Sequence record: OV032902.1 | DNA length: 64,000 nt | Strand: one strand, 5' to 3' | In this document: piece by piece, positions 7,377-57,178 of the stretch | How positions within the stretch are numbered: the stretch's first letter is position 1 | Layout of the letters: each line of letters starts with the position of its first letter | Program-made: the position numbers and the translations under genes | The notes under the pieces: generated by a model | Told to the model about the DNA's origin: nothing | Databases searched by the model: none | Seen by the model: the letters and a program-made list of their open reading frames with translations, nothing else

Positions 7377-8906
7377 ATGTTTACTGCTAAACTTAAAGCA
7401 ATACCAGCTGCAATGTCGCACAAGGTTGCTTATCCAATTCGTGCGCTACGTGATATTCCGACTGGCGAGTTTGTTAAGACTCCGCGTGGCAACTTCGTTA
7501 TGATGGGTGGCTATCATCCAACTAACTCAACCACTGGTCCAGGTAACTGTCACAAGACAGACGAAATCTTCTATGGTCCGATGAAAGTACTGAGTCATAT
7601 CCAAGCCTCTCAGGTTCTTGCTTATGATACAGAAAGCTCTCTAGGCTACCGTCGCTTTGAAGACCGTAAAGGCATGTTCTATGGCCTTGAAGAATTTGAT
7701 TTCTCTATGCAGCAATACCTAGATAACCCACGCTTCATGCTTTGGCAACGTGGTCAAATCGAAGGTGATGAATTCTTCGAAGCTATTAAAGAATATGGAC
7801 GTGAGCGTTCTAAAGATAAGAAGAACATGATTACTCTTCCTATCTGTGACCCTGCGGGCAACCCTATCCGTATCCTTGCTCCATCAATTGTTGTAATCGA
7901 TTCTCTATCTGCGATGTCTGCATCATCTATCCAAGAAAAGATTGTTGACAAGAACGCAGTAGGTGACTCTGGTCAGAACACAGTCTTCATGAAAGACGGT
8001 GCAATGAAAACTCAGCTTATCACACAGCTTCCTGTTTGTACAGCTAAGTACGGCATGCACTTCGCTATGACTGCACACATTGGTGACCATATCCAAATGG
8101 ACCAATATGCACCTAAGCCACTTTCTCTACAGTTCTCTAAGAACGGTACTAAGCAGAAAGGTGTTCCACAGAAGTTCCAGTTCATTAACGACTTCGTTGG
8201 TGAAATCTACAACGCTAAGCCACTTGTACACCCTGTTGACAAGTCGCCTAAGTACCCTTACTCAGAAGCTGACCGTGAGAAAGGTAATGACCTTATCCAA
8301 ATCACAGAAGTTAGCTCACGTAACAAGAACGGCCAGTCCGGTGTTGTTCGTCCTATCATCGTTTCACAGCGTGATGGTATTCTACCGGGCATGACTGAAT
8401 TTGATTACATCAAAGAAACTTGTAAGAAGTGGGGTATCTCTGGTAACAACACTACTTTCCACATGGACCTACGTCCTGATGTTAACATCGGTCGTACTAC
8501 AGTTCAGAAGAAGATTCGTGATGATTGGCGTCTAGATACAGCGATGCGTATCACTGCGGAAATGAACCAGATGCGTCTTCTATGGAAAGACATGGAAGAT
8601 ATTCTTTGTACTCCTGAAGAGCTGTACAACGACATCAAGAACATGGGCTACGATTGGGACATTCTTCTATTCACTCGCTACTGGTGGGTTCCAACAGAAG
8701 AAGAAAAGAACCAAGACTTCAACGAGCTTACTACTTATGACTTGCTAATGATGCGTAAAGGTCTTTACCATCCTTACTGGTTAGAAGATGACAAAGTTAC
8801 TGTTAAGAAAGCATGGCTAACTAATCTTCACAAAGAGAAAGAAAAGTTGGATGACATTGCAGAAGCTGCACCGCATCGTGCTAAGCTACTAGCTCAACTG
8901 AAATAA
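7377..8906 (+). CDS. uvsX: UvsX/RecA-like recombinase
   Basis: P-loop GPGNCHKT, YDTESS, Walker B IVVIDSLS. Next to RNase H, as in phiKZ. Confidence 0.85.
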   Translation: MFTAKLKAIPAAMSHKVAYPIRALRDIPTGEFVKTPRGNFVMMGGYHPTNSTTGPGNCHKTDEIFYGPMKVLSHIQASQVLAYDTESSLGYRRFEDRKGMFYGLEEFDFSMQQYLDNPRFMLWQRGQIEGDEFFEAIKEYGRERSKDKKNMITLPICDPAGNPIRILAPSIVVIDSLSAMSASSIQEKIVDKNAVGDSGQNTVFMKDGAMKTQLITQLPVCTAKYGMHFAMTAHIGDHIQMDQYAPKPLSLQFSKNGTKQKGVPQKFQFINDFVGEIYNAKPLVHPVDKSPKYPYSEADREKGNDLIQITEVSSRNKNGQSGVVRPIIVSQRDGILPGMTEFDYIKETCKKWGISGNNTTFHMDLRPDVNIGRTTVQKKIRDDWRLDTAMRITAEMNQMRLLWKDMEDILCTPEELYNDIKNMGYDWDILLFTRYWWVPTEEEKNQDFNELTTYDLLMMRKGLYHPYWLEDDKVTVKKAWLTNLHKEKEKLDDIAEAAPHRAKLLAQLK

Positions 8907-54158: not shown

Positions 54159-54665
54159 ATGTTTACACAATCTAAACAAGTAAAGTACTCACATGAAGAT
54201 GGGAAGATGCTATTCGGAAAGAGAATAGATCTAGCAGCTACTAGTCGATACCGTATCGAGGAAGATGCAAGACTAGCTCCACTCATCCAGCTAGTAGATG
54301 TTAACGTTAACTACGAGATCGGTGATCAAGAGTTTACCTTTAAGACAAACGCTACTGCTAGACGCAATGCAACGTTCCATACAGCTATGGGATCTTCAGG
54401 TAAGTTTCTAGAGATCGAATTCAAAGAACTCATCGACGACGAAGTCGCTCGTATGTTGTTTGATGAAGGCTTTAATCCTACCGAGATCTCTAAGCTACAT
54501 CTCTGCTTTACTATTAAGGCAGAAGTAGATGAGAACGGTATAGCTTTTGCTGAAGTTACTAAGCTACGTTTCATGGGTACAACTGATACAGTTAAGAAAG
54601 CTACTAATGCTCGTATTAAGTTACAAGACACTAGTTGGTATCATCTAAGTGCTACATTCATCTAA
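54159..54665 (+). CDS. Hypothetical protein
   Basis: 168 aa with AAGGA RBS, followed by a terminator. Confidence 0.55.
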   Translation: MFTQSKQVKYSHEDGKMLFGKRIDLAATSRYRIEEDARLAPLIQLVDVNVNYEIGDQEFTFKTNATARRNATFHTAMGSSGKFLEIEFKELIDDEVARMLFDEGFNPTEISKLHLCFTIKAEVDENGIAFAEVTKLRFMGTTDTVKKATNARIKLQDTSWYHLSATFI

Positions 54666-54889
54666 CTAACAGGGTAGTCTCTTCGGAGGCTATCCTTACC
54701 TCTTTCTTCTTAATCTTTTTTTTTTCATTTGGTTAAAAACATGACAGTCTAATTCTTTGGTTTGGGGGAACCTTCTAGGAGGGGGCAATTAGCGTTAATC
54801 TAAGCAAAGGTTAAGGGCCTACTAGAATAGTAGACTTAAGCTAGCTATAGATAGAAGCTAACTACCTACTAGAGAATACCTACTTGCCT

Positions 54890-55013
54890 AATTATGTAGG
54901 AGTAACTGGCTAACAAGTAAGACGACGACTTGATTAGCATGAAGAGCTTTTACTCCTTGTCTCCTTTGGGTAGCTCCTGGCCGAAAGGCTGGGAGTACTA
55001 TCTTTTATTTTTT
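54890..55013 (+). ncRNA. Array cassette 0: candidate sRNA (~115 nt)
   Basis: TAC-N10-AATTATGTAG; AGGAGTAA/TTACTCCT stem; unpaired TCTCCTTT; GAAA-loop terminator plus T tract. Confidence 0.6.
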
Positions 55014-55025
55014 ACGTCGTGGCGG

Positions 55026-55350
55026 AATATTATGAATCTCATGGAGTGACTCATCGAAAGAACTGTATAGCTCATACTCTACAGTCAGAGAAATTCCATT
55101 TTCGTATCATTTAACTAATAAGGGCATTGCTCTTTTTCGTTACTTGTATAGACTAACTGTAATTATCAGTCATTGGCTCTAGGGGACGGGAACATCCCTT
55201 AGACAAACCTTGCAGAAGATGAGTTTAATTTCGTAATAGTCCGAGCAGGACCATTGCAATTTAGCATCATTTAGATTAACCTCCATTCTTTTGCACAATA
55301 TATTGGGAAAGCCTCCTGCCTACGGGCAGGAGGTTATTCTCGATCTTTTT
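55026..55350 (+). ncRNA. Array cassette 1: candidate sRNA (~315 nt)
   Basis: TAC-N10-AATATTATG; stems ACTGTA/TACAGT and TCTAGGGGA/TCCCTTAGA; AACCTCCATT; TACG terminator. Confidence 0.6.
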
Positions 55351-55364
55351 ATACATGCAAGTAT

Positions 55365-55582
55365 AATAGTATGACAATCCTCCATCGTTTTGATTTTGTT
55401 AACTCAAAATTGGCATAGTTTGTCACTCTGAAAGTTGTTTATAGTTGTAATAGTAATCCAGCAAACTCACAAACATTTATTGTTCTGTAGTGTTGCTTCC
55501 TGTACCGCTGGATTATAGAGTAAGATGTAACGCTTCTCTATCTGCCTCCTGCCTTCGGGCAGGAGGTATTGTTCTTTTTTAT
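55365..55582 (+). ncRNA. Array cassette 2: candidate sRNA (~210 nt)
   Basis: TAC-N10-AATAGTATG; TGACAA/TTGTCA stem enclosing TCCTCC; TAATCCAGC/GCTGGATTA stem; TTCG terminator. Confidence 0.6.
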
Positions 55583-55592
55583 TGGGTCGTGT

Positions 55593-55785
55593 AATATTGT
55601 AGTAAACATTAGTCGTTTACTTTTACCTGAATTAAAGAATAATTAGTAGTCCCATAAAAGAAACAGATCTAGCCATTTGTCTTTCACCTGAACACACCAT
55701 GGGACTTTACACTCGCTAGTCAAGGCGATTGTGTCGAGCAACTGATATCTCTCTGGCCTTCGGGTCAGGGAGCTTATCAATTTTT
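55593..55785 (+). ncRNA. Array cassette 3: candidate sRNA (~185 nt)
   Basis: TAT-N10-AATATTGTAG; GTAAAC/GTTTAC and AGTCCCAT/ATGGGACT stems; TTCG terminator. Confidence 0.6.
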
Positions 55786-55798
55786 AACGCCTGCACCT

Positions 55799-56024
55799 AA
55801 TATTATAGTAAAGTCCTCCTGCATGATCAATTTATGTTGCTTTACGTTTGAACCTTCATGCTACCATAGCGGTTGTTTTGTTGTTTCTATTTTCATTATA
55901 AGTTCCTTAAGTTATTTGAGTACAACTCCTTCTGGTTGTTTGACTCGCGTTAGTACAGACGCGGTCAGAGTTAATGGGTGCTAACCTCCTGGCCTTCGGG
56001 TCAGGAGGATTAGTTTTATTTTTA
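55799..56024 (+). ncRNA. Array cassette 4: candidate sRNA (~220 nt)
   Basis: AAC-N10-AATATTATAG; GTAAAG/CTTTAC stem enclosing TCCTCCT; ACAAC/GTTGT stem with TCCTTCTG loop; TTCG terminator. Confidence 0.6.
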
Positions 56025-56035
56025 CTCATGTATCT

Positions 56036-56207
56036 AATATTATGAACTGCAATGGATCTCTTTCGATATCTTTCTGTTTTTCATTTATTAATTCTTGTTA
56101 TAAGTAAGTTGACTCCTGTGCGACTTATGGCTGAGGAAGTACAACCTCGTGCCTCGGGTTTAAGGTTACACCTCCTGCCTTCGGGCAGGAGGTGTAATTA
56201 TTTTTTA
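56036..56207 (+). ncRNA. Array cassette 5: candidate sRNA (~165 nt)
   Basis: TAC-N10-AATATTATG; TAAGTTG/CGACTTA stem with ACTCCTGTG loop; TTCG terminator. Confidence 0.6.
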
Positions 56208-56218
56208 CATCGTTGTGC

Positions 56219-56335
56219 AATAATGTAGTAAGGACCACAGCCATGATTCTTGCAAGTCTACGAGTACGACGTAGGCGATTCTCTTTGTCTTGGAAAGTCT
56301 CGGCCTTCGGGTCGGGACTAATCCTTTTATTTTTA
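56219..56335 (+). ncRNA. Array cassette 6: candidate sRNA (~110 nt)
   Basis: TAC-N10-AATAATGTAG; GTCTACG/CGTAGGC stem; TTCG terminator plus T tract. Confidence 0.55.
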
Positions 56336-56422
56336 CACCAAAATTAACGAAATAGTATGGAGTATATTTTATCACAGCGATAAGGTACTTCACATGTCTT
56401 TATCTAAAATAGGGTATAACTT

Positions 56423-56701
56423 ATGGGTTATGTACTACTAGCTGTCGTGTGTTTCGTTTATCTATGTTACCGCATAGAAAGACGAAGTATGAGAATCGAG
56501 CTAAACCAAGAAAAGACTGTGTTGTTCAGTAAGCTTAATACTATTCAAGAGGCACGTTCGTGGTCTCCTGAAAAGGCAACGCAGAAAATTCAAGGGATAT
56601 TAGCACAAGAGAATCGTACTGGCTTGACATCACGATTGACGACCTGCGTCACCGATGAAGAGATTCATCGTGTGTGTCATGGTAATAGTTGTAAAGTGTA
56701 A
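56423..56701 (+). CDS. Small membrane-anchored protein
   Basis: N-terminal TM, 92 aa. Confidence 0.5.
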   Translation: MGYVLLAVVCFVYLCYRIERRSMRIELNQEKTVLFSKLNTIQEARSWSPEKATQKIQGILAQENRTGLTSRLTTCVTDEEIHRVCHGNSCKV

Positions 56702-57139: not shown

Positions 57140-57178
57140 TAAAGTCCCTCTCCCTTCTGGGGAGAGGGCTTTAATTGT

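Follow-up and report, generated by a model that had tools for sequence, protein, structure and literature searches.

A predicted island of tandem small RNA genes in the nucleus-forming Vibrio jumbo phage vB_VpaM_sm033

Results

A candidate small RNA island in the largest gene-free gap

A stretch of 64,000 nucleotides (nt) from sequence record OV032902.1, referred to here as the window, was matched at 100% identity to Vibrio phage vB_VpaM_sm033 (320,253 bp), window positions being record positions minus 124,000. The phage is a phiKZ-like nucleus-forming jumbo phage, and its annotation includes a nuclear shell protein as well as several RNA polymerase subunits of beta type that are split. Inside the record, the longest interval free of annotated genes (window 54666-56422, 1,758 nt) separates SM033_00193 (54159-54665) from SM033_00194 (56423-56701) and, at an estimated probability of roughly 0.7, represents a conserved island of independently transcribed small non-coding RNAs (sRNAs) shared by a clade of nucleus-forming Vibrio jumbo phages. 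As read from the sequence, an RNA polymerase would start and stop seven times along 1.45 kb, giving discrete RNAs of ~100-310 nt in middle or late infection.

Conserved position, hairpins, compensatory changes and evolution slower than that of synonymous sites are what functional small RNAs predict, and these were evaluated by comparing the locus with four further ones. Relatives were obtained via homologues of SM033_00195 and by tblastn with the conserved core protein SM033_00196 (DUF7484), which yielded L015 and L016 (identical to L017), both from uncultured phages present in public read sets, and the GenBank phages vB_pir03 and C-ZP2022. Three related loci are contained in the Logan samples SRR24799356, SRR22580040 and SRR23478457. 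No relatives of the flanking proteins SM033_00193, 00194 and 00196 were found in the IMG/VR or JGI metagenomes, and homologues of SM033_00193 were found only in identical phages or on a contig ending at the start of the gap.

Anatomy of the array

The gap, which is placed between two co-directional operons, holds eight tandem units, U0 followed by U1-U7, the latter seven each with a terminator of its own. A first-pass annotation made from the letters of the window had proposed seven head-to-tail sRNA cassettes at 54875-56335, each opening with the motif (T/A)A(C/T)-N10-AATNNT(A/G)T. All seven motifs were recovered on the + strand, with AAT at 54890, 55026, 55365, 55593, 55799, 56036 and 56219. 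All seven units also end, as had been described, in a GC-rich hairpin of 10-16 bp (tetraloop UUCG in five, UACG in one and GAAA in one) whose T tract leads into the following motif, and the terminators, T tracts and G-U pairs agree with the proposed + strand orientation. The predicted RNAs span 99-308 nt and the bodies between junctions 69-276 nt. These bodies, at 35-38% GC in most units, are unrelated to one another in sequence; what repeats is the terminator-plus-promoter junction of ~65 nt, present in seven copies at 64-83% identity. At the level of sequence these seven units have the features of a stand-alone sRNA gene, namely a predicted promoter and an intrinsic terminator of their own and no open reading frame (ORF).

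Some aspects of the earlier description had to be amended. The seven units stand, but the limits given for the locus were too narrow, since a further unit, U0, lies upstream and an eighth promoter lies downstream of them. In addition, the bodies had been called hairpin-rich, a statement not borne out by fold z-scores of -0.1 to -2.5 (mean near -1), which do not go beyond chance; the strong z-scores of whole units stem from the terminators. As for the rarity of the motif, the pattern alone is not rare, having 11 matches in the window against 7.25 expected, but its clustering is non-random. Seven of the 11 matches fall within 1.35 kb on one strand, and the six downstream ones are each directly 3' of a terminator, none standing before the first promoter (P1). 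A stricter pattern that includes the T run gave six matches against 0.36 expected, all six of them in the array. The features of the locus are listed below by window position, strand and description.

54671..54696, +, intrinsic terminator of SM033_00193, followed by a long T run to ~54729
54738..54889, +, U0, with promoter-like AAC-N10-AATTCTTT at 54738-54758; 5' block conserved in L016, pir03 and C-ZP2022
54764-54785, +, G-rich motif of U0, GGGGGAACC..GGAGGGGG, unique in the sm033 genome, with a UAG-rich tail downstream
54877..54897, +, promoter P1, TAC-N10-AATTATGT, conserved in L015
54898..55012, +, U1 (~105 nt), with homologues in L015, L016, pir03 and C-ZP2022 that have different stems and the same loop core
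54914-54932, +, U1 hairpin, loop AAGACGACG at 54919-54927
54953 and 54961, +, CU-rich CTCCT motifs of U1
54973-54996, +, U1 terminator, GAAA loop and then T tract
55013..55351, +, P2 (55013-55033) and U2 (~308 nt); terminator 55310-55335, UACG loop
55352..55579, +, P3 (55352-55372) and U3 (~202 nt); terminator 55543-55568, UUCG
55580..55785, +, P4 (55580-55600) and U4 (~178 nt); terminator 55749-55772, UUCG
55786..56022, +, P5 (55786-55806) and U5 (~208 nt); terminator 55985-56008, UUCG
56023..56205, +, P6 (56023-56043) and U6 (~162 nt); terminator 56164-56199, UUCG, 16-bp stem
56206..56336, +, P7 (56206-56226) and U7 (~99 nt), with two 5' hairpins and a CU-rich GATTCTCTTT stretch; terminator 56296-56319, UUCG
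56334..56422, +, eighth promoter (AAT at 56351, longer spacer after TAC) and ~60-nt leader of SM033_00194
56423..56701, +, SM033_00194, first coding gene 3' of the array, predicted to encode a small membrane protein; 52% amino-acid identity to the L015 homologue

As U0 has no terminator of its own in sm033, its transcript would continue into U1. The 5' end of U5 is similar to the tail of U2 (repeat family D8). The eighth promoter and the leader of SM033_00194 are both conserved in L015 and L016. The part of the leader just 5' of the start codon, ..AATGGGGTATAACT(T)ATG (window 56395-56425, L015 7385-7410, L016 9650-9677), was observed to be near-invariant in the three phages, and this despite only ~52% protein identity, which hints at a translational control element.

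Conservation of position and turnover of units

In each of the four relatives a gene-free stretch of 1.3-2.5 kb was found directly 5' of the SM033_00194 homologue, with the same promoter motif alternating with tetraloop terminators, and this position is kept although the flanking proteins are only 30-65% identical among the phages. Alignment of the syntenic loci had been proposed as a check for gain or loss of units. The phages were found to differ in unit number, with counts of 3 to 7, and the insertions and deletions map to the junctions. Besides U0, four units are present in L015, three in L016 and at least five in each of pir03 and C-ZP2022, and the region of U3-U6 in sm033 corresponds to one unrelated unit in L015. 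The content of the array had been portrayed as a variable payload. This applies only to U3-U6, which are lineage-specific, with no homologue in the relatives, whereas U0, U1, U2 and U7 are conserved families. U0, U1, U2 and U7 would then be the old members of the array, with a turnover zone between U2 and U7, and U3-U6 were probably gained or lost by recombination between the near-identical terminator-promoter junctions.

Three side observations concern related non-coding elements. Another non-coding block, conserved with 84% identity across 44 nt, follows a GC-rich hairpin in the arrays of L016 (8650-8730), pir03 (L018 8540-8640, minus strand) and C-ZP2022, and is absent from sm033 and L015. 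A second U0-like element lies at another locus in pir03 and C-ZP2022, two genes downstream of the SM033_00193 homologue (L002 7790-7935; L003 7790-7960); it consists of a T run, a promoter-like motif, an AAACC..GGTAGAGGC block and an AGAUAG-rich tail, and the sequence after it differs between the two phages. In Vibrio phage BONAISHI no clear counterpart of the array was found. A 564-nt gene-free gap beside its DUF7484 gene (L020 5756-6320) is rich in CUA/UAG-type short repeats that recall the U0 tail but differ from U0 in arrangement and strand.

Conserved unit families and selection on unit bodies

Among the terminated units, U1 comes first in all five phages; it measures ~100-120 nt. Its hairpin has an invariant loop core, GACGACG, carried on five different stems of 4-7 bp, several with G-U pairs, when each copy is folded alone, and is followed by an unpaired linker of the TCTCCT type, present in all five phages, and then by the terminator. 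Covariation, for which a syntenic alignment had been proposed, was seen here in the form of compensatory changes in the stem. For the U1 and U7 families MAFFT/RNAalifold produced structurally poor alignments, and the U1 hairpin was for this reason measured directly. Compared to shuffled flanks the individual stems gave P = 0.02-0.11, and Fisher combination over four independent lineages gave ~0.002.

In all five phages the array closes with U7 (~100 nt, but 131 nt in L016), which has double-sided changes in its 5' hairpin and an invariant TTCTCT before the terminator. The U1 loop and linker and the TTCTCT of U7 are conserved candidate seeds, the U1 loop and linker being unpaired in the predicted folds. 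Between sm033 and L015, U2 (~290-310 nt) retains its opening 14 nt, a 23-nt block ahead of the terminator and some of its internal blocks, and the terminator stem carries a compensatory change between the two. U0 has a conserved G-rich 5' motif, which recurs in the three phages listed above for its 5' block; the U0 tail is not alignable, and TAG-containing short repeats in it are approximately threefold enriched in each of the five phages (P ≤ 0.0007 each).

The rate of change of the bodies was estimated from the pair pir03 and C-ZP2022, in which unit bodies are 78-97% identical, as compared to 67% (range 54-87%) at the third codon positions of seven flanking genes. First codon positions in this pair are 90.5% identical, which is close to the value of the unit bodies. 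Since the bodies are more conserved than third codon positions, purifying selection acts on them and not on the promoters and terminators alone.

Non-coding status of the locus

The first-pass annotation saw no convincing gene in the locus and this was upheld, as no ORF of at least 10 codons has a ribosome-binding site. Codon log-odds were negative for every ORF of the region on either strand except one at +0.04; the neighbouring genes scored +0.13 to +0.41 in seven of eight cases, SM033_00194 standing at 0.006. Six-frame comparison (tblastx) with the relatives revealed no similarity beyond the terminators and no coding remnant. The longest stop-free stretch (103 codons, 55673-55981) crosses a terminator-promoter junction and is within chance. 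Searches of the region and the four related loci gave only chance-level matches in Rfam 15 at a permissive threshold (E-value ≤ 10 for the region) and no transfer RNA with ARAGORN. An RNA anti-CRISPR, acting as a mimic of the repeats of clustered regularly interspaced short palindromic repeat (CRISPR) arrays, was considered and rejected, there being no match to a CRISPR repeat family in the Rfam search.

In the GenBank annotation of vB_pir03, 17 ORFs of 29-50 amino acids are placed on both strands across the syntenic array (L018 6572-9029, record 66290-68747); in C-ZP2022 only two ORFs are annotated across it. The small ORFs of pir03 are probably spurious and the array region in the records of the relatives would merit re-annotation.

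A predicted phage promoter of non-early type

The whole sm033 genome was scanned, piece by piece, for the motif of the array. Its interpretation as a phage promoter gained from this, as it recurs after terminators and 20-50 nt 5' of a Shine-Dalgarno (SD) sequence and ATG at ~20 protein genes genome-wide, including genes beside those for tail fibre, endolysin and helicase. The motif is also present in the arrays of the four relatives. The predicted layout comprises a T-rich/TAC element near -22, AAT at -8 to -6 and T-R-T-R at the putative start. No sigma-70-like site was found at the junctions on the + strand, where the two promoter elements are 10 nt apart.

In phiKZ, the middle promoter has an AAanTTACc-like element centred near -24, and the late promoter has T(-3)ATG(+1) overlapping the transcription start, with G as the start (PMC4666361). 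In the array a T run is joined to TAC in five of the seven units, the others having TAT or AAC, at -21 to -19 from the predicted start; this amounts to no more than a resemblance to the phiKZ middle element. At the predicted start itself, three of the seven units have TATG and four have TGTAG or TATAG. Because the motif resembles both the middle TTAC element and the late TATG initiator of phiKZ, we infer that transcription of the units would fall to the non-virion RNA polymerase during middle or late infection and would begin at the purine after T-R-T. The predicted starts of U1-U7 are thus 54898, 55034, 55373, 55601, 55807, 56044 and 56227.

A second and highly uniform motif, with core CTATAT[TA]AC and TTTGA upstream, occurs in 26 copies in the sm033 genome, all on the + strand (for example window 11532, 30835, 46760, 51067 and 58041, and record 190239 and 204384). 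It stands before the genes for the nuclear shell and for one RNA polymerase subunit, and also before many small genes. None of the 26 copies lies within the array. Early promoters of phiKZ-like phages are a strongly conserved AT-rich motif of ~10 nt located 5' of early operons (PMC7598289), and the 26-copy motif, judged from its sequence, fits this published description of promoters used by the virion polymerase.

Promoters of the array type were also seen before SM033_00002, 00300 and 00302 (record 7575-7645, 288974-289060 and 297025-297090; L004, L009), each with a short perfect hairpin immediately 3' of it. These hairpins fall at the predicted 5' end of the messenger RNA (mRNA), and the neighbours are giant and tail-fibre genes. 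They may serve as 5' stabilisers or give rise to an sRNA derived from a 5' untranslated region (5'UTR), like that upstream of the phiKZ gp182 family.

CU-rich motifs complementary to ribosome-binding sites

Most units carry CU-rich stretches complementary to the ribosome-binding sites of sm033. The motifs used for evaluation were taken from the start regions of sm033 itself, whose SD is of the AAGGAG(A) type. In the sm033 bodies 8 anti-SD pentamers were counted versus 1.1 expected (P ~0.0015). Under an identical definition, 12 versus 2.4 were counted in the units of L015, L016 and pir03 taken together, a number that no shuffle reached, and SD-like pentamers were not enriched in these units. 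The CU motif is unpaired in the predicted U1 folds of three phages. It is conceivable, if rather doubtful, that the unit RNAs modulate translation by pairing with the SD regions of mRNAs or by mimicking the anti-SD of ribosomal RNA.

Discussion

Weighing the readings of the locus

Several points weigh against an island of sRNA genes. The promoter class and the start sites are deduced from sequence and from analogy with phiKZ. Most unit bodies fold no better than shuffles, the covariation comes from only four independent lineages, and a function of U3-U6 is unsupported because these units have no homologues. The CU-motif evaluation in sm033 was post hoc, the second set contains homologues of U1, U2 and U7 and is not fully independent, and part of the signal could derive from decayed left arms of terminators (family D8). 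Similarity and complementarity of the unit bodies to the rest of the sm033 genome were at chance level, so that no specific target emerged within the phage genome, and sequences complementary to the U1 loop showed no enrichment in it either.

Four other explanations were considered, and at least one result contradicts each of them. The first, that a hyperplastic region contains empty or decayed cassettes, in which mobile terminator-promoter modules once flanked small protein genes and the bodies are functionless remnants, is unlikely. This explanation would account for junctions built as a repeated composite terminator-promoter module in the sense described for T4-like phages (PMC4122927), for a unit number that varies among relatives through changes at the junctions, and for U3-U6, which are without homologues, as well as for the unremarkable folding of most bodies. 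It does not account for bodies more conserved than synonymous sites or for conserved loops and seeds accompanied by compensatory changes in the stems. Neither tblastx nor codon statistics recovered a coding remnant, and the locus has kept its position between flanking proteins of only 30-65% identity.

A function residing in the DNA or in the act of transcription, be it a transcript-primed replication origin, a packaging or anchoring site, or a sink for the phage polymerase or insulator between the two operons, is distinctly improbable. Eight promoters within 1.7 kb of AT-rich non-coding DNA, set between co-directional operons, are compatible with such a role. A replication origin is however not indicated by GC skew, which has no inflection at the locus, and an insulator would not need conserved loops. 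Selection extends to the unit bodies beyond promoters and terminators, and the conserved hairpins use G-U pairs, which are possible only in RNA of the + strand.

A multi-step leader that controls SM033_00194-00195 by serial termination and read-through (attenuation) is very improbable. All units point towards SM033_00194, the array is always directly 5' of the homologue of this gene, and the 5' end of U5 resembles the left arm of a terminator and could compete with one; SM033_00194, on the other hand, has its own conserved promoter and leader immediately 5', attenuation does not need a promoter per unit, and the unit number ranges from 3 to 7 with the downstream genes unchanged. That the units encode very small peptides, for example from leaderless mini-ORFs opening at the ATG of the TATG initiator, is hardly credible: U2, U3 and U6 do start with ATG and the second-position unit opens with an ORF of 5-6 codons in sm033, L015, pir03 and C-ZP2022, but this ATG belongs to the promoter motif and, by the phiKZ rule that the start is G, the AUG would lie outside the transcript, there is no SD, codon scores are negative, every frame contains stops, TAG is enriched threefold in U0, and the peptides are not conserved between lineages.

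Comparison with known systems

The predicted island of sRNA genes has a formal parallel in promoter-early stem-loops (PeSLs), the composite terminator/promoter cassettes of T4-like phages (PMC2839356, PMC4122927). Like PeSLs, the array combines a terminator hairpin and the promoter directly 3' of it into a short conserved module present in many copies, insertions and deletions between relatives occur at the modules, and a conserved scaffold carries exchangeable content. PeSLs differ in having early promoters of the host sigma-70 type, whereas the promoter of the array is predicted to be of a non-early type used by a phage polymerase; furthermore, PeSLs flank protein ORFs scattered in hyperplastic regions, and the content of the array is non-coding, confined to one tandem array at a fixed locus, and in several cases a conserved RNA family. 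The locus had at first not been recognised as a described system; its scaffold matches the PeSL concept (PMC4122927), and no report of a tandem sRNA island was found. An island of phage small RNAs of this kind has most likely not been described before.

An analogy with CRISPR arrays, also drawn in the first-pass annotation, failed when the repeats were compared for length, identity and family match and the spacers for uniformity. In place of CRISPR repeats and uniform spacers the locus has a ~65-nt terminator-promoter module at 64-83% identity and bodies of 69-276 nt. No cas genes are annotated among the neighbours, which are hypothetical proteins, and Rfam returned no CRISPR repeat match (E-value ≤ 10).

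In the same virus group, 11 sRNAs have been mapped in 201phi2-1, of which 3 are intergenic and most are 5'UTR fragments, and a conserved 5'UTR-derived sRNA is found upstream of the phiKZ gp182 family (PMC11512511); in phiKZ one predicted sRNA could not be confirmed. These sRNAs resemble the array units in being short, with a terminator soon after the start, and in being conserved in some cases among genera. They differ in that they are single, dispersed and mostly 5'UTR-derived, with no tandem island reported and no sequence similarity to the array units. The array motif bears a resemblance to phiKZ middle and late promoters (PMC4666361) in a TTAC-type element near -24 and a T-A-T-G initiator overlapping the predicted start, and it likewise forms a class distinct from the strongly conserved AT-rich early promoter (PMC7598289). 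Unlike them, the motif of the Vibrio phages, as predicted from sequence, has AAT as a further conserved element (-8 to -6) and allows TGTAG or TATAG where it starts transcription.

Bacteria possess sibling and sponge RNAs, such as the tandem LhrC1-5 of Listeria, PrrF1/2 of Pseudomonas and the repeat RNAs of the CsrB/RsmZ type. Sibling sRNAs are adjacent stand-alone genes with their own promoter and terminator, and their C/U-rich seeds are aimed at ribosome-binding sites. The array likewise consists of side-by-side units, each with its own predicted promoter and terminator, and has C/U-rich stretches, and the repeated short motif of U0 is reminiscent of sponge RNAs. Sibling sRNAs are however paralogues of one another, whereas the bodies of the array are unrelated in sequence.

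Implications

Small RNAs of lytic phages are barely charted, above all in nucleus-forming jumbo phages. A locus with 4-8 stand-alone RNA genes would, if the reading as sRNA genes is true, be the densest non-coding RNA cluster known in this group and would define at least three new RNA families (U0, U1 and U7), and it would yield precise and testable predictions of RNA sizes, 5' ends, seeds and timing. A more speculative and in our view doubtful extension is that of an expandable sRNA island made by the non-virion polymerase, comprising anti-SD mimics, a hairpin RNA with the GACGACG loop and a sponge-like RNA with UAG repeats, which, once infection is past its midpoint, reprogrammes translation or the handling of RNA and whose members are added or swapped at the terminator-promoter joints by recombination. 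Were this true, it would be the RNA counterpart of the shuffling of protein-gene cassettes in T4-like phages. The island as such would also carry the concept of terminator-promoter cassettes as drivers of modular evolution over from protein genes to RNA genes.

Other observations in the sm033 genome

A perfect bidirectional terminator hairpin lies at window 57146-57168 between the convergent genes SM033_00195 and 00196. The gene for the alpha subunit of ribonucleotide reductase (L005 19720-23050, record 69620-72950) is annotated in two pieces with an HNH endonuclease gene between them, an arrangement that points to an intron or intein carrying a homing endonuclease. In the final 14.8 kb of the record (L009 17733-32553, record 305433-320253; L004 1-7539 is also concerned) almost no genes are annotated, and tblastx gave + strand similarity to the giant repeat proteins SM033_00001-3. 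The closing 127 nt of the record are identical to its opening 127 nt. An unannotated stretch of 13.7 kb at the record's end appears to belong to a repeat-protein gene of very large size that crosses the ends of the linearised record and was overlooked by the annotation.

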